From Lepidodermella squamata (taxonomy: Eukaryota > Animalia > Gastrotricha), in contig JBLDXI010000009.1 in NCBI GenBank assembly GCA_047495785.1, forward strand, positions 2,542,001 through 2,606,000: a DNA stretch of 64,000 nucleotides, in the 5' to 3' direction. The notes beneath the pieces were generated by a model that did not search any database, had not been told where the DNA came from, and saw only the letters and a list, made by a program, of their open reading frames with translations. The translations under genes and the position numbers were made by a program. Of the stretch, positions 46,201-56,306 are shown in pieces (the first letter of the stretch is position 1; every line of letters begins with the position of its first letter).

Positions 46201-47182
46201 ATCGACAATCGACCTTATTGAGTTTACTTGGCTAAATTTAAGGGTTTATCGAATTAAAATAAGGTCAAATCATTACCTAATAAGGTTATAAAGATATTGG
46301 TTGAAAAAAATGAAATACAAAATAAAAAAATATTGATATGTTTCTCGATTTTTGACAGTCTTCCGGAGTCGAGAAGTTTGATTTGAACGACGACCAGCTA
46401 CCGAGTCCCCGCTATGACTTTCGAGTTCTCAGTATAGCAAGAAGTAAGAGATGAAGAGAAAAAAACCATTTTTCTTAAGGTTTCACCGAAAAATATTCTG
46501 CAGTTTGTACCATATAATAAGGATTCGCCGAAATTTGCGCCAATTGAACATAACATTTGCGCAGTTTTTAGCGCAGTTGTCGTTTGCGCAAATGTCGCCA
46601 TACGCATACGTTAATAAGTGGCGCAATCAACGGAAAGCACGGATTAATTTGAAGTCTCTCAAAGTTTGAAAGGAGAGAGGCGGTCTATCGCATGACCAGA
46701 GCTTGACCAAATGACTCAAATGACCAAATGACTCCGGAGTCAGCCCGTGGACCACACTGAACAAATTGATGTAAAAACCACTGCGGAACCCTTTTTATAT
46801 TTTTCCGTAGTTTGAAATTTTGTTTTATAAATAATTCGAAGATATGAACCCCTGTTAATTATTAAAATCAGGTCGTTTCTTAAAAATCAGTCCTCACGCA
46901 AAGCCGGCGTCACTATGTTTGCGACGTTTTCTCAAATACCTCGAAATTCTAAGATAAGCATGATAAATAAACACTATCCACAGGCAAAATGCGACTCCTG
47001 AAATTGGTTAAGAGATGAATAATTAGCTTTAAAATTTTTATTCATCTTCTCATTCATCACTCGACTAACATTCTAATATCACCGATCAAGCATCCTCACG
47101 AGTGGAATGAGCACGCGCCTGTTATCTTTAAAGTTCGGCTCAAGCAGTCTTGACCTTGACCTTCGAGCCGTACAGATCAGCC

Positions 47183-47658
47183 TCAGCGCTCAGCCTCCTT
47201 GGGGTTGCCTTGAAGGTGCTTGGGATTGCGAACGTTTTTGGACATGGATCCGCGCTCAGCCTCCTTGGGGTTGCCTTGAAGGTGCTTGGGATTGCGAACG
47301 TTTTTGGACATGGATCCGCGCTCAGCCTCCTTGGGGCTGCCTTGAAGGTGCTTGGGATTGCGAACGTTTTTGGACATGGATCCGCGCTCAGCCTCCTTGG
47401 GGCTGCCTTGAAGGTGCTTGGGATTGCGAACGTTTTTGGACATGGATCCGCGCTCAGCCTCCTTGGGGCTGCCTTGAAGGTGCTTGGGATTGCGAACGTT
47501 TTTAGACATGGATCCGCGCTCAGCCTCCTTGGGGTTGCCTTGCTCAGCGTATACAGCGACAACAGCCTGTTAGAACATAAAAACAGTTAACATTTCATAT
47601 ATATTGTGGTATATTGTAGACGAACCGCTAGAAATATAACAATCAGCAATTTGTTCAT
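47183..47658 (-). CDS. Secreted tandem-repeat precursor, 138 aa. Exons 47658-47626, 47566-47183
   Basis: MNKLLIVIFLA|AVVAVYA signal peptide joined across a 59-nt GT-AG intron, then EQGNPKEAER-[GSMSKNVRNPKHLQG(S/N)PKEAER]x5-stop. TATAAGAG at 47748-47741, Inr-like TTCACTT ~30 bp downstream, AATAAA at 47042-47037. Confidence 0.85.
47187..47541. repeat. 66-bp tandem repeat, ~5.4 units (coding; see CDS 47183-47658)
   Basis: CAGCCTCCTT recurs at 47191, 47257, 47323, 47389, 47455 and 47521; only two variable positions among the full units. Confidence 0.97.
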
Positions 47659-48179
47659 TGCGGGAGGGAAAAAGTCGAGTCGAACCGGGAAATGTTTTCG
47701 CGTTAGAGCAAAAAGTGAAATTCGACGGAGACTCTACCGTCTCTTATAGCCTGCTAACCGGCAGGCACCTGTGCACATTTTATTTTCGCAGAGTTCTTGT
47801 GTTGGAAGTGGAGAAATTTAGCGGCGCAGTATGGTAGTGTGGTCAATGGGGAATTGCTTTGGGCATGCCGTTTGGCTTTTTGAACTAGGTTCGAATTTGA
47901 ACAGCCGCCTAGCCATAAGAATGGCAATAATAAGCGAAGCAATAATAATTTCAACTCGCGGGCAATGTGAGCACGTTTTCGAGTTGTTTCGTAGTTAGAA
48001 AGCGATATTTGAGTAGAAGAGCACTAAATTATACTACACTAAAACGAGCTTATTCTATCAACTTGACAAAAAAATAAACTCTTGGTCAAGACCATATAAT
48101 TTTTCGGTCCAGCCATATCAAACTCAGTTTTGATTAAATTTCTGATTTTTGAATATTACATATTTTTTGAAATTTACAG

Positions 48180-48318
48180 CGTTATTGTCATGGTGGTTGG
48201 CGCCGGTCGAGGTCTATTGGTCACCACTACACTCCGCGCCGCCCGCAAAACCAAATGCCTCGTGAAAGTTTACGCGGTCGAGAAGAACCCGAACGCGATC
48301 GTGACGCTGCGTCACCGA
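48180..48318 (+). pseudogene. PRMT5: Isolated exon fragment of protein arginine methyltransferase 5
   Basis: After a TTTACAG acceptor: [43 protein letters not shown], matching the PRMT5 SAM-binding motifs ([16 protein letters not shown]). No other PRMT5 exons seen nearby. Confidence 0.8.
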
Positions 48319-49044
48319 GTGTTCACAGGGTGCGAAGTACAGGGGTGCTGGGGTGTCGCGACACCCCAGCTCCGGGGCTCTAACCAGATCAAGGCTGAAA
48401 AAACCACAGGGGGGACCCTTTGGTTTCTTCGGCTGGGTCCTAGAATCCACGATCTTGAGTTTGAACTCCACTTTATTAAAGCATATTACGAAAAAATGTG
48501 TCATCAAACATAAATTTATAGAAATTTATGGCTTACTTGACTTGGATAATAATTATTAGGATTTTATTATTGGGTGTGACTTTTTTCTCACTTGGAACAA
48601 AGTTTCACTGAATTTTAGCGAATGCGACTTCAAAAAAGGACTCGGTGACCCTGAATATCAGGTTATTCCGAAGTCGATGTTCATTCGGTAAAGGGTTATT
48701 TGGATTGGGAATAGTTTCGAGCGATAAACGCCACACATCAATACCCGAGATTGCACAGGTTATGATTTTTAGATTTTTAGCTTTCAAGATATACGCCATT
48801 CGGAAGCTGGTAGGACGGGAAATTCGTGCAAAAACCCTGTGTTATTCTTGTTCGACGTTGCGAAACCAACGCAGTAAAGATCTGTCCCGTCTCCATTATT
48901 ACAACGCGTTAATGCATGGGCGTAGAAAATTCGAATTAAACCGGTTTTCTCATTATATCGATCGAGGATGTTCGCTAATCATTGTCAATGCGAATGTCAG
49001 ATGCGGCCAAAATCTAAATAATGAGTTGGAACTCATTATTTTGA

Positions 49045-49095
49045 ATTATTCCAATTAAAACCGCAATTAGAAGACCAAGAATCATGGTATAAAAG
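49045..49095 (+). promoter_or_regulatory. Promoter of cationic gene copy D: CAATTA motifs and TATAAAA (49088-49094)
   Basis: TCCAATTAAA and ATGGTATAAAAGCAGC are conserved upstream of all four copies. Confidence 0.7.
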
Positions 49096-49178
49096 CAGCG
49101 GCAGCTAAGTTCGAAATCATCAACCATCTCTCGCTCCAAACTAATAATTTTTCTTCAACCAATTCTCCTTCAATAACA

Positions 49179-49692
49179 ATGCGTGCTTTCCTCGCTATTG
49201 CTGTTGTCGTCTTGCTCGGACTTGGTATTTCCTAAGCTTTATTGTAACCTAACGCTCTACATTCTCCAAACTGTTTCAGCCTACTCCGAGGCTAAGGTCT
49301 GGAATGTCGAATCGAAAGAAATGCACCGCCACTACGAGAAGAAGGTCAGCGCCTCGGCGAGCCGATCCTACGAGAACAAGCGCGGCTTCAGCAAGAAGTT
49401 CGCCCCGAAGAAGTTCCACGGCGGCAAGAAGTTCGGCGGCCGCAAGATGAACAAGCGCCGCGGATCCTACTCCAAGTCGGTCTCCAAGTCTGTTTCGTAC
49501 TCCAAGTCGGTCTCGTTCTCCGGCAACCGCTGGGGCAAGAACAAGCGCTTCGGCGGTCGCAAGTTCGGCAAGCACGGCAAGAACTTCGGCTACGGCCGCA
49601 AGGGCGGCAAGTTCGGCCACGGCAAGTTCGGCGGTCGCAAGGCCAACAAGGGCTCGTACTCCGTCAGCAAGTCGGTCAGCGTCTCCAACTAA
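49179..49692 (+). CDS. Secreted cationic Lys/Gly/Ser/Phe-rich protein, copy D (152 aa). Exons 49179-49224, 49280-49692
   Basis: MRAFLAIAVVVLLGL|AYSEAK...; TATAAAA upstream; AATAAA at ~49733. Confidence 0.9.
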
Positions 49693-50392: not shown

Positions 50393-52720
50393 ATGAAGTT
50401 CACGTTCATTTTTTTCGCGATTAGACTGAACCTATTGAACCCTGTTAATCCAAAGCCATATCGCCTTAGATTATTGGTTCTGACGCCGATTTACGGCTTC
50501 GACCTGACGCAAGCTCAGTCAACCGACCTTTTCGTCCACGAGTTCGCCAGCTGGATCAACAACAGAACTGACATACTGCCTGATTATCATCTAGAAATCG
50601 ACACTAGGGATGAGTTTCTGGGATATGACTCTGTTAACCAATTAATCGCCTTCAGACGTGACGAGGACCCAAGCCAAACCTATCAAGCCCCGATAATTAC
50701 TGGTGTTACTCTGTCGACGAGTTGCAAATCGCTCGGATCTGTTTTGCCTCACATGCATGCTGTCGCTGTAGCAGTGGTTTGCCAATCTCCAATATTCAGC
50801 GACCATAGTACCTACCCTAACTTATATCTATCTTCAAATACTGGAAAAACATCTGCGATCGCATTGCTTCATTTCATGAGAAATGTCGGGAAATGGAATA
50901 AGTTTGGAATTCTTGGCCAGGTTGGTTATATTTTCGACACAACAATGGGATTCTTTATGTATGAAAAAGCTACTGCTAACAACTTTTCGATCCCTTGGTT
51001 TCATTTCGCAACGGAAATCGGCAATGAAGTGATAACTGCCTTTAATGAATCTGGAGTTAGAATACTGCTCCTAACTCTTACGAGTCAAAATTCAATTGCA
51101 AAATTCTTTTGCGAAACATACAAAATGGGAATTACGGGCCCGAGATACGTTTTTCTGGTTCTATCGGCGGTTTTCACGCTGAACCCCGATTCGAAATGCT
51201 CACCTGAAGAAATGGCACTTCAATTACGCCAGACCTTCGCCTTTGGCTACATGTCTACACCTGACAATTTTTCGCGGCTAACTGAACTTGGATACACGCC
51301 TCAATTTCTTGTGGAAACAATGACGAGGCTGAATAATTCAACTAGCGACTATTTGAACGTATTCGACTCGCACGATGCTCTACTTCGAGTTGTTCTGGCC
51401 TTGAATGAAACGGAAAGGCGGCTGAACCTTTATCACAACTTGACTCTACGTGACTACAAGTCCTACCCGGAAGTTGTGATGAAAGAGGCGAATTATTCAG
51501 TATTTCATTCCAAGGTAACCGGCAGCCGGGTTGGGTTGACTTCATATGGCTCAAGGGGCCAGTTTATCGGCGATGTTCAAGCTATTTCCCAATGGTCACC
51601 GAAGCGAGGTATGCAGAACATAGTTTTGATTAGGCGGAAACCTAATAGTTCAGACGATTCAGACGAGTTCGAGCTTCGAAGCTATGGATCTGATGTTGTC
51701 AGACAGCCGGAATGGATATCTTCACAAGTTCCTAATGACAGCTCAACCGTTATTGTTAGGTTCTACAGATATCCGATCGCTGCGACTGGATTTATTCGGT
51801 TCTTAGTAACATCAGCTAGCCTAATCCAAATAGCAGGAATTATCGGCATTTTAACGAAAAAATTACGAATTACAGCTTTTCGAAGTTCGAAAATTCTCGC
51901 GATTCTCGGGTGCGTTATTCTGAACGCATCCTCGGCTTTTTTTATGATTGATCGAGAGGATAAATTTGTTTATTACGCTAAAGCCTCGGTAGCTGTTTTA
52001 CTGTTGGGATGCAGCATTCTGTTGTCATCGACCCTTTTGCGCGTAATACTCATTTATTATTCGATCCAAGCGAGAAATGTCCAGTTGAAGAGAAAACGAG
52101 CCAAGGCTGATAGGCTGAGCATGTACCGTTCATCTGCTTCTTCAAGAGCAGCAGTCGATCGAAACCATAGAATCACGAGTTTAGGTCGGGATGTTCTTTC
52201 CGGAATCGATTTCAAGGTTGTTAAGGCTACATTGGCTATTGCAACGATTGATTTTTCGATTTTGGTCGCTGTCTTCATTTTCACTGACATAAAATGCGAC
52301 GATATATTGCTCCACACTGATTTATCTGAGGGAGTTGATGAAATGGTGGAAATTTGGGCTGTCGACTGTTTTATAAGTGATAACTCTTACACGCCGAGCT
52401 GGTCGATGATGGGCCTTATCTTGAGCGAGTTGTTGCTCCTTGTCCTCGGTGCCTTGACGAGCCTGTCTATCATGAAGCAGATGAAGGTGAAAATTGTTGA
52501 ATTTTCGGCAATGAGTGCTACTGTTGTGGCTGCTGCTACGTTGTTACCAGCTGCGGCGGCTATAATCCTGGCTACGTCGCGCAATGCTTTAGTCCAACAA
52601 GCAGCTTTCGCATTTCTGTCAGTCATTTTTTCGATTGTAATGAGCGTTGCCGTTCTATTTCCTAGTTTGAAGGACAATGTTAGGGTGCAAAATTCAAGAC
52701 GTTTTAAACGAACTCGATAG
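50393..52720 (+). CDS. Intronless class C GPCR (GABA-B-receptor-like: Venus-flytrap domain plus 7TM, no cysteine-rich domain), paralogue 1
   Basis: INNRTDILPDYHL, SPIFSDHSTYPNLY, KW, ITGPRYVFL VFT hallmarks; seven hydrophobic helices ending VLFP. Confidence 0.85.
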   Translation: MKFTFIFFAIRLNLLNPVNPKPYRLRLLVLTPIYGFDLTQAQSTDLFVHEFASWINNRTDILPDYHLEIDTRDEFLGYDSVNQLIAFRRDEDPSQTYQAPIITGVTLSTSCKSLGSVLPHMHAVAVAVVCQSPIFSDHSTYPNLYLSSNTGKTSAIALLHFMRNVGKWNKFGILGQVGYIFDTTMGFFMYEKATANNFSIPWFHFATEIGNEVITAFNESGVRILLLTLTSQNSIAKFFCETYKMGITGPRYVFLVLSAVFTLNPDSKCSPEEMALQLRQTFAFGYMSTPDNFSRLTELGYTPQFLVETMTRLNNSTSDYLNVFDSHDALLRVVLALNETERRLNLYHNLTLRDYKSYPEVVMKEANYSVFHSKVTGSRVGLTSYGSRGQFIGDVQAISQWSPKRGMQNIVLIRRKPNSSDDSDEFELRSYGSDVVRQPEWISSQVPNDSSTVIVRFYRYPIAATGFIRFLVTSASLIQIAGIIGILTKKLRITAFRSSKILAILGCVILNASSAFFMIDREDKFVYYAKASVAVLLLGCSILLSSTLLRVILIYYSIQARNVQLKRKRAKADRLSMYRSSASSRAAVDRNHRITSLGRDVLSGIDFKVVKATLAIATIDFSILVAVFIFTDIKCDDILLHTDLSEGVDEMVEIWAVDCFISDNSYTPSWSMMGLILSELLLLVLGALTSLSIMKQMKVKIVEFSAMSATVVAAATLLPAAAAIILATSRNALVQQAAFAFLSVIFSIVMSVAVLFPSLKDNVRVQNSRRFKRTR

Positions 52721-54023: not shown

Positions 54024-56306
54024 ATGAAATTAGTCAGCATTTTAATCCTCATCTTGACAGTCTTGGCGAGGCCAGTCTTTCCTAAGCCCTATCGTCTTCG
54101 AATCCTACTCTTATCGCCGATTTTCGGCATTGACCCGGTTCAGAACAAGGCCACAGAATTCTTCATCGCCGACTTCCTAGCTATGATCAACAACCGAACC
54201 GACATTCTGCCCGACTACGACATCGAGTTGGAACGACGCGACGAATTTATCGGATTCAACGCAGTGAAAAACCTGGTTACCTTCCGCCGGGATGCTGCCA
54301 GCATACCAGCTGGAACTTACCAAGCCCCCATCGCAACAGGATTTGCATTTTCGTCCGGGTGCAAATCAGCCGGGCCTGTTTTGCCGTACCTGGACCTTGT
54401 TGGTCTAGCTGTCGTCTGCCAGTCACCGATTTTCAGCGATCGAACCCCGAATCCGAACCTTTATCACACACTGAGTACAGGTAAGACCTCCGCAGTCGCC
54501 CTGCTGCATTTCATACGAAATATCGGGAAATGGAACCGATTCGGGATTATCGGGCAGGTCGGTTCGACTTTCGATACTACTATGGGTTTCTTTCTATTTG
54601 ACAAGGCAACGGAAAATAATTTCACGGTTCCTTGGTTCAATTTTGTAACTGACATCGACGCAGCAGTGGTCAGTGACTTCAAAGATTCAGGGGTTAGAAT
54701 TTTAGTGTCAACCCTCGGCAGCCAAATCGCTGTAGCGCAACTGCTATGTGAGGCCTTCAAAGTTGGGATAACAGGGCCTAAATACGTTTTTCTCGTCAAT
54801 TCCGCCTCTTTCAGCCCGAATCCGTCGTCCGGGTGCCCGGTTGAAGTGATGCTAACGCAACTCAAGCAAACGTTTGTTTTCGGTTACCTAGCAACGCCTG
54901 ATAATTTTACCAGGGTGACTGATCTTGGGTACACGCCGCAATTTATCGACGATCGAATGAGCCGTTTAACCAGCTCTCGGGGTGATTTTATCGGAATTTA
55001 CGGATTTCACGATGGTTTAATTCGCGTCCTAATTACATTGAATGATACCGAGAACCGATTGAAGCTGAAGTACAACTTGACATTACGTGACTACAACCTA
55101 TACCCAGGCTTAACAATGCGAGAGGCTAACAGTTCGATTTTGAACTCGAAGGTAACAGGACTTCGAGTCGGCTTGACATCATACGGGTTGAAGGGACAAG
55201 TCATTGGAGACATTCAGGCCGTATCGCAGTGGTCACCAAACAACGGGATGACCACTATTGTTTTGATTAAGCAAAATCTGAAGGCTGACTCGGATGAATT
55301 CGCTTTCAACACTTTCTCCCTCGATAACTTGAACCAGCCGGCCTGGATTGCAGACAAAGCTCCGTTCGATAGCCCTGTTCTCAAGGTTATCGAATCTAAG
55401 ATCTCGCTCGAAGCTTTTGGCCTTATTTGGTTTCTAATAGCGGCGACAAGCTTGTTTCAATTCGGAGGGATACTTCTTGTCATTATGAAACGAAAAGTTG
55501 TGAATTTCGGCTCTTCGAAATTGATCGGTTTGGCTGGATCAATCGTTTTGAACTCAGCATCAGGGTGCTTTTCGTTTGATAGAACTGCTGGTAGTAGTTA
55601 TCTCGCAGCTTTTTCCATTACCCTAGCGATCTTTGGCAGTAGCGTTATCTTCATCACCTCAGCTTTAAGGATTATTTTCACCTATTTCAGCATTCGTAAA
55701 ATGAACTCGTTTCGAAAGAAATCTAGCCACCATACCTCGGCGAATTTCGCTTCAGGGAACTCGGTGGCTCACGCCGAGTTGGATCCAGCAACTTTGACTC
55801 AAATAGACAGGTCAACAATGAAAGCTGGTTGTGTTTCGGCTGGGGTAAATCTCGCAATTTTGGTCGCTTTTCTCGCAAGTAACAACATGAAATGCTTCGA
55901 TGAGCTGCTAAGCTCTAGTTACTTCGAATCAATCGATGAAGTTGTGGAAATTTGGCATGTTCAATGTGCGATGAGCCGCGAATATTCATCAATCGGTTGG
56001 TTCTTACTGAGTTTCATCGCCGCTGAGGCAATGGCATTTCTATTAATTGCTCTGTTGAGCATCGTACAGATGAAGCATCTGAAGGTCGGGGTCGTCGAAT
56101 TTGCGGCCATGAGTATTGGGGTGATATCATCGAGTACCCTTCTGCCGGCTAGTATTGTTATTCTTCTAGCGACTTCGAATAATACCGTTGTCCAGCAAAC
56201 TGCAGCAGCTTTTCTGACGGTTGGGGTTTCATTGGCGACTGGCGTTCCGCTGATTTATCCGACTTTCCCCCATCGAAATGGGCAACGACGCAGTTCTGAA
56301 TTCTGA
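54024..56306 (+). CDS. Intronless class C GPCR (GABA-B-receptor-like), paralogue 2
   Basis: Signal peptide, INNRTDILPDYDI, SPIFSDRTPNPNLY, ITGPKYVFL, 7TM; colinear with paralogue 1. Confidence 0.85.
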   Translation: MKLVSILILILTVLARPVFPKPYRLRILLLSPIFGIDPVQNKATEFFIADFLAMINNRTDILPDYDIELERRDEFIGFNAVKNLVTFRRDAASIPAGTYQAPIATGFAFSSGCKSAGPVLPYLDLVGLAVVCQSPIFSDRTPNPNLYHTLSTGKTSAVALLHFIRNIGKWNRFGIIGQVGSTFDTTMGFFLFDKATENNFTVPWFNFVTDIDAAVVSDFKDSGVRILVSTLGSQIAVAQLLCEAFKVGITGPKYVFLVNSASFSPNPSSGCPVEVMLTQLKQTFVFGYLATPDNFTRVTDLGYTPQFIDDRMSRLTSSRGDFIGIYGFHDGLIRVLITLNDTENRLKLKYNLTLRDYNLYPGLTMREANSSILNSKVTGLRVGLTSYGLKGQVIGDIQAVSQWSPNNGMTTIVLIKQNLKADSDEFAFNTFSLDNLNQPAWIADKAPFDSPVLKVIESKISLEAFGLIWFLIAATSLFQFGGILLVIMKRKVVNFGSSKLIGLAGSIVLNSASGCFSFDRTAGSSYLAAFSITLAIFGSSVIFITSALRIIFTYFSIRKMNSFRKKSSHHTSANFASGNSVAHAELDPATLTQIDRSTMKAGCVSAGVNLAILVAFLASNNMKCFDELLSSSYFESIDEVVEIWHVQCAMSREYSSIGWFLLSFIAAEAMAFLLIALLSIVQMKHLKVGVVEFAAMSIGVISSSTLLPASIVILLATSNNTVVQQTAAAFLTVGVSLATGVPLIYPTFPHRNGQRRSSEF

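Follow-up and report, generated by a model that had tools for sequence, protein, structure and literature searches.

The window analysed here is a 64,000-nt stretch of the genome of the gastrotrich Lepidodermella squamata, to which all coordinates below refer. It has a eukaryotic character, with short introns and ~42% G+C, and it contains a 66-bp tandem array that raises two questions: is the array a plain minisatellite or a coding part of a gene, and, if it is coding, what would be made from its product? The initial annotation had read the array as a secreted multi-core peptide precursor, in which a signal peptide is followed by alternating spacers and cores. The published assembly of this species comprises 122 Mb in 157 contigs, and an adult transcriptome is available (PMC11660948). 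The assembly searched in this study comprises 121 Mb in 151 contigs.

Gene structure around the array

From the translations and a direct read of the minus strand, we found all elements of a two-exon gene at 47658-47183 (Table 1). All elements named in the initial annotation were confirmed, at the positions that it gave. Read exon by exon, the gene encodes a hydrophobic leader that ends in the small-residue pattern V-Y-A and is followed by one Glu and then by a nine-residue spacer that occurs six times and alternates with five identical cores of 13 residues, with the stop codon directly 3' of the sixth spacer. Exon 2 thereby carries, in order, the end of the signal peptide, the Glu and six PKEAER motifs that bracket the cores. 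The leader was judged to be a signal peptide by eye and from its conservation in the gene family described below.

The TATA box, TATAAG where most paralogues have TATAAA, is located 32 nt upstream of an initiator-like A at 47716, at which we infer that transcription would start. The upstream promoter block contains an E-box (CAGGTG, 47772-47767), while the second E-box of the family, CACGTG, has been lost from this gene. On the other side, an AATAAA at 47042-47037 lies 140 nt past the stop.

Table 1 Features of the minus-strand gene and its flanks in the window.
Feature	Coordinates	Strand	Remarks
Upstream promoter block, conserved	47749..47800	-	Aligned with 10 paralogous loci; mean pairwise identity 0.61
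TATA box TATAAG	47743..47748	-	Direct read; column conserved in the family alignment
Predicted 5'UTR	47659..47716	-	From initiator-like TCACTT (A at 47716) to the base before the ATG; mean pairwise identity 0.67
Exon 1, coding part	47626..47658	-	11 codons, first part of the signal peptide, phase 0; ATG at 47658
Intron	47567..47625	-	59 nt, GT..AG
Exon 2, coding part	47183..47566	-	127 codons plus TGA (47185-47183)
66-bp tandem array, 5.4 copies	47186..47542	-	Tandem Repeats Finder; single-copy in the genome
Relic of ancestral C-terminal codons and stop	47140..47184	-	+1 frame, untranslated; aligns with paralogue C42b
3'UTR homologous to that of C42b	47037..47139	-	blastn, 80% identity, E 1.9e-10; ends in AATAAA

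The array itself (period 66, 98% matches in Tandem Repeats Finder) is remarkably uniform. A column-by-column comparison of the units revealed only two variable columns, a synonymous TCT/TCC and an AAC/AGC (Asn/Ser), in agreement with the earlier description of the unit variants. A third difference is a G-to-T change that turns the would-be next GGA into the TGA stop. Taken alone, the array is weak evidence for coding because four of the six reading frames are open through it, and the variation within it adds little because two variable sites cannot test selection and the copies are too alike and too young. Codon usage of the family does not separate the frames either, with 0.28 log2 odds per codon for the antisense frame and 0.15 for the sense frame. 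The antisense frame is open over 47150-47590 on the plus strand and reads as a hydrophobic, amphipathic 22-residue repeat. Since this frame has neither an ATG nor a signal peptide across the array, we take its repeat as a by-product of the sense-strand repeat. None of the plus-strand frames across the array has a signal peptide led by an ATG. The +1 frame likewise offers no ATG, nor could the conserved acceptor connect it to exon 1, which rules it out as the translated frame.

An 11-locus gene family with a shared cassette

The decisive evidence that the array is coding is comparative and comes from outside it. The 258-nt 5' part of the gene (47543-47800) matches 10 other loci in the assembly at 71-79% identity, unlike the array, which is unique in the genome. 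In addition, a 21-nt pattern around the ATG was found at the 11 family loci and at one off-target site at two mismatches, while the reversed control gave no match. All 11 loci have the promoter, the 5'UTR, the signal exon, the intron position and the start of exon 2 in common, and their payloads are unrelated. The aligned cassette consists of an upstream block with two E-boxes, a TATA box, an initiator-like block and a 5'UTR, after which the coding part begins with a 33-nt exon; the members then have their intron at one shared codon position and open exon 2 with the same seven codons. Both the position and the length of the intron (56-63 nt) are kept in the nine intact paralogues.

The cassette is not conserved evenly. 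Mean pairwise identity is 0.90 in the coding part of exon 1, 0.82 in the first 21 nt of exon 2 and 0.64 in the intron, and it falls to about 0.5 past the signal peptide. When the gene studied here is compared with its paralogues, the exon parts are 0.85-0.88 identical and the intron 0.58. Exon parts that are more conserved than the intron between them are what one would predict if both the splice and the signal peptide are real. The occurrence of the same promoter, signal exon, intron and cleavage region at 10 other loci thus bears out the earlier claim that the array is coding and not a plain minisatellite.

Intact gene models were obtained at nine of the 11 loci. The two broken members, L016 and L019 (paralogues C13a and C42c), show that genes turn over in this family; in one of them the splice donor and acceptor are gone, and in the other exon 2 runs into a stop after five codons. 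The family promoters (L004-L012) also contain a conserved E-box pair, CACGTG and CAGGTG, just upstream of the TATA box and about 60-140 nt before each ATG, which suggests that the members may be under shared control by a bHLH-type factor.

In a typical member the signal peptide, split by the intron, leads into an acidic stretch of Glu residues and a pro-region that is hydrophilic and rich in Pro; PKEAER comes next, and the protein closes with an amphipathic tail of strong positive charge. Of the family features, the gene studied here has the promoter with TATA box and CAGGTG, the 5'UTR, the 33-nt phase-0 exon, the intron and the junction motif in frame. It has neither the acidic run and full pro-region after the signal peptide nor the strongly cationic amphipathic tail after the motif. 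Its pro-region comprises four residues (the Glu and three more) before the first motif, compared with roughly 40-80 in the family, and the tail is replaced by five tandem 22-residue units, each ending in PKEAER. The best explanation of these comparisons is that the gene would be a remodelled member of a lineage-specific family of two-exon secreted pre-pro-peptide genes.

The 22-residue unit carries a charge of +3 and contains two Pro and 18% hydrophobic residues, and its hydrophobic moment (0.39) is not above that of shuffled sequences. In composition the units are like the pro-regions of the family and unlike its payload peptides. DNA homology between the 48-nt core and any of the paralogues is not above that of shuffles. 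AlphaFold2 gave no fold (mean pLDDT 54.8, pTM 0.12), and disorder is predicted.

The PKEAER motif is a probable cleavage site

A degenerate pattern for DNA coding for PKEAER has 13 matches in the 121 Mb searched and three in the reversed control. Twelve of the 13 fall within the family, six of them in the gene studied here and six in five paralogues. Every codon of the motif varies at its third position among the copies and the peptide is unchanged, which fixes the reading frame of the array and indicates that the motif is under constraint.

In the paralogues, PKEAER or a variant at the same place (KR at three sites, RR at one) directly precedes the tails. The segments before the motif are hydrophilic and not amphipathic. 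The tails past it have a net charge of +6 to +12, and most of them have a helical hydrophobic moment of 0.58-0.73, above all or nearly all shuffles; the C56b tail does not. C42a, C13c and C56c each have two cleavage-type sites, so multi-site layouts recur in the family. Because the motif is specific to the family, has a terminal Arg, can be exchanged for dibasic sites and marks the junction of pro-region and payload, PKEAER is probably a pro-peptide cleavage site.

These observations lend comparative support to the monobasic cut after EAER that the initial annotation had proposed. They do not support its division of the repeat into a 13-residue core and a nine-residue spacer, as nothing marks a cut at the C-terminal side of the core; the supported unit is therefore the whole 22-mer. 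The multi-core reading thus stands for a secreted, spliced gene with a putative cleavage motif, and not for the boundary between core and spacer. At monobasic sites, convertases are expected to have a basic residue at P4, P6 or P8. The motif of the gene studied here, with Glu at P2 and Lys at P5 and P7, fits these usual rules poorly.

Two paralogues stand out for their tails. The tails of C10 (L015:1163-1426:-, residues 57-88) and C56a (L020:1133-1426:-) are 32 residues long, with a charge of +7 to +8, a moment of 0.72-0.73 and an Ala-rich hydrophobic end. Of all products of the family these tails come closest to antimicrobial peptides, and they look like linear cationic host-defence peptides. 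The 3' flanks of these two genes are 91% identical. In C42a (L024:1598-2035:+), a unit of ~44 residues has been duplicated internally, with the KR form of the junction motif in front of both copies; the family thus contains another multi-copy layout of independent origin.

A relic of the ancestral tail downstream of the stop

About 14 codons of an ancestral C-terminus follow immediately after the present TGA in the +1 frame, and they end in the ancestral TGA at 47142-47140. The alignment with C42b runs on from there through ~100 nt to the polyadenylation signal. The present stop is located 42 nt upstream of the ancestral one, after a net frame change of one base. Since the C-terminal codons, the stop and the 3'UTR all align with those of C42b, the ancestor of this gene had a cationic tail.

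Possible fates of the gene product

We assign a probability of about one half to the reading that the gene encodes a secreted polyprotein that would be cut after each motif by the enzyme that matures the paralogues, giving five hydrophilic, non-lytic 22-mers. In this scheme the protein would enter the secretory pathway, signal peptidase would cut after the V-Y-A pattern, and the putative endoprotease that frees the paralogue tails would also cut after the Arg of each motif. Cleavage of this kind would release one decapeptide from the N-terminus together with five 22-mers, almost identical to one another, hydrophilic and of weak positive charge; loss of the terminal Arg to a carboxypeptidase would shorten these to 21-mers. 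Such peptides would not lyse membranes, and so they would serve another role than the host-defence-like tails of the paralogues. A bolder version, which we put forward only tentatively, is that PKEAER could be a non-canonical site (monobasic, Glu at P2) for a new protease, and that the gene may supply five copies of a new non-lytic signalling or modulatory 21-/22-mer from a converted host-defence precursor.

A serious rival, although on balance an unlikely one, is that the gene is a decaying or neutral member of the family. A small indel after the last motif would have made the stop and discarded the tail, the 66-bp piece would have grown by slippage, and the locus would yield no useful product, whether transcribed or not. 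The ancestral C-terminal codons and stop left out of frame in the 3'UTR, the collapsed pro-region, the missing cationic tail and the lost E-box are all in line with such a history, and dead copies do arise in this family, as C13a and C42c demonstrate. In the cassette tree the terminal branch of the gene is 0.19, the same as that of the broken copy C42c, but the tree is star-like and gives no reading on acceleration. There is also no transcript-derived protein in the protein collections, either for the gene or for the paralogues searched. Against decay, no damage is seen in the ATG, the signal peptide, the two splice sites, the TATA box, the initiator or the polyadenylation signal. The length of the unit also divides by three, and every one of the six motifs keeps the frame of the family. 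The excess of exon over intron identity to the paralogues described above likewise argues against a decaying copy.

It is more doubtful that the secreted protein is used uncut, as an intrinsically disordered repeat protein of mucus, adhesive, cuticle or egg coat in which PKEAER would be a binding or cross-linking motif. The lack of a predicted fold and of canonical dibasic sites would suit such a protein, and a neighbouring gene (49181-49692) likewise encodes a secreted cationic repeat protein. However, the fixed place of the motif before amphipathic tails and its KR and RR variants in the paralogues point to proteolysis, and the mature chain, at only ~120 residues, has no recognised feature typical of structural repeat proteins.

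It is very improbable that the array is a minisatellite without coding function, or that the gene lies on the opposite strand or in a different frame. The open frames and the codon score of the antisense strand would allow it, but the conserved cassette, the motif and the homology of the 3'UTR are all found on the minus strand in a single frame, and the competing frames have the defects of start codon, splice junction and signal peptide given above.

Comparison with known precursor systems

The initial annotation had likened the gene to apidaecin-type, neuropeptide and RiPP precursors. This resemblance turned out to be one of layout only, since dibasic sites, an amidation signal, dipeptidyl spacers, neighbouring modifying enzymes and homology are all absent. 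Among the closest layouts is that of the apidaecin and ant hymenoptaecin precursors, which have a signal peptide, direct repeats and a short conserved spacer with a processing site, and in which the copy number grows by tandem duplication inside one exon (PMC3415428). They use RR or KR together with an EAEP spacer, which a dipeptidyl aminopeptidase trims, and the antimicrobial activity of the repeated peptide is proven (PMC3415428). By contrast, the gene studied here has a monobasic site (E-R, Glu at P2), a hydrophilic unit that is not antimicrobial-like and no sequence homology to them. The dibasic RR or KR with an X-Pro/X-Ala dipeptide spacer that defines each unit of those precursors (PMC3415428) is absent from the gene, and Pfam, word-index and exhaustive searches gave no credible similarity of the repeat to known apidaecin or hymenoptaecin members.

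At the level of the family, frog skin peptide genes (PMC7106915) and mussel myticalins (PMC5577615) show a comparable design, with a near-invariant signal region, a pro-piece that is acidic, cleavage at a basic site and a cationic payload that changes fast and is unrelated between members. There is no homology to these genes, and the family described here differs from them in that it also conserves the promoter and 5'UTR and has PKEAER instead of KR at the junction; the gene studied here has, moreover, lost the cationic payload. The Drosophila Baramicin genes offer a parallel for that loss. They encode a modular host-defence polypeptide whose paralogues gain and lose modules by duplication and truncation and probably differ in their roles, and their modules are cut at furin sites to give products that have been detected (PMC8423362, PMC9246212). 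The gene studied here, in contrast, is known from its sequence alone, and the module that it has kept is pro-region-like.

Yeast alpha-factor and the multi-copy neuropeptide precursors of bilaterians also combine a signal peptide with tandem copies of a short peptide and a constant spacer. Such precursors carry dibasic sites at set positions around each copy, with basic sites flanking it on both sides in bilaterian neuropeptide precursors, and frequently a Gly as amidation donor. In the gene studied here the putative site is on one side only, and the Gly precedes Ser/Asn-Pro and not a basic residue. RiPP precursors (cyanobactins, dikaritins) are characterised by nearby genes for dedicated maturation enzymes and by recognition or Kex2 sites that flank each core. 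Here the neighbouring ORFs include no protease or modifying enzyme, and the gene has no KR sites. The likeness to all of these known designs is therefore one of layout and evolution, and not of sequence or cleavage chemistry.

Searches for relatives beyond this genome

Protein searches were run exon by exon. Neither exon 2 nor the exon 2 products of eight paralogues had a Pfam match above the cut-off, and word-index searches with exon 2 of the gene studied here and of C56c and C10 found no counterpart in protein collections. An exhaustive search of representative proteins with exon 2 returned 20 weak matches, the best with an E value of 1.9e-09. Seven of the matched proteins were fetched and proved to have phage or bacterial 22-residue leucine-rich-type repeats or to be unrelated repeat proteins. 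In P0001, P0002, P0013 and P0015, which have a phage-like or bacterial look, the leucine-rich-type repeat of 22 residues has the period of the array and one seven-residue word in common with it. Because the hydrophobic core of the leucine-rich-type repeat is absent from the array, we rejected these matches as periodicity artefacts and judge the likeness to be convergence or chance.

The ESM Atlas gave a best score of 0.79, to generic repeat clusters, which was uninformative. The literal peptide strings were not found in the papers searched, and the exact ORFs of the window were absent from the protein collection. A metagenome scan with a 20-mer of the cassette yielded 14 matches on unrelated contigs, several of them in one conserved coding stretch; there was no similarity beyond the 20-mer, and we consider these matches to be due to chance. 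We thus found no relatives of the family outside this genome in Pfam, protein, Atlas and metagenome searches.

Implications for gastrotrich secreted peptides

A search of the papers available found none on antimicrobial peptides or peptide precursors of gastrotrichs. If the family is expressed, it would be the first candidate family of host-defence or secreted-peptide genes described for this phylum. Its evolutionary design, a frozen cassette of promoter and signal peptide with a free-running payload, is like that of the frog and mussel peptide genes and has an independent origin. The gene studied here appears to capture a payload swap in progress, in which the old tail persists as an out-of-frame relic. 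If it does encode a polyprotein with a new signalling peptide, it would parallel Baramicin in a phylum that has no described peptide effectors; if it is merely a decaying copy, it would be an ordinary by-product of a fast-turnover gene family. With six putative cutting motifs in one short protein, the gene would also be a convenient substrate for finding the processing enzyme.

Neighbouring genes

The neighbouring ORFs comprise a PRMT5 fragment, two ANF-receptor-type ORFs and another secreted repeat protein. The last of these is encoded by a divergent gene at 49088-49692 on the plus strand, which has its own TATA box, a signal-peptide exon (ATG at 49181), a small phase-1 intron and a 136-codon exon rich in Lys, Gly and Phe with Ser-Val-Ser-Lys repeats. 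Pfam gave no match for it, and it falls in another family than the PKEAER genes. Between the two secreted-protein genes lies an isolated plus-strand ORF (48130-48513) with a 48-residue match to the PRMT5 methyltransferase domain (E 1e-14), which represents either a single exon of some larger gene or a mere gene fragment. Further along, two tandem intron-free ORFs at 50393-52720 and 54024-56306 on the plus strand encode 775 and 760 residues, and their exact sequences are absent from the protein collection. Both combine an ANF-receptor ligand-binding domain at the N-terminus with a C-terminal half that is hydrophobic, an arrangement that makes them look like class-C receptors.
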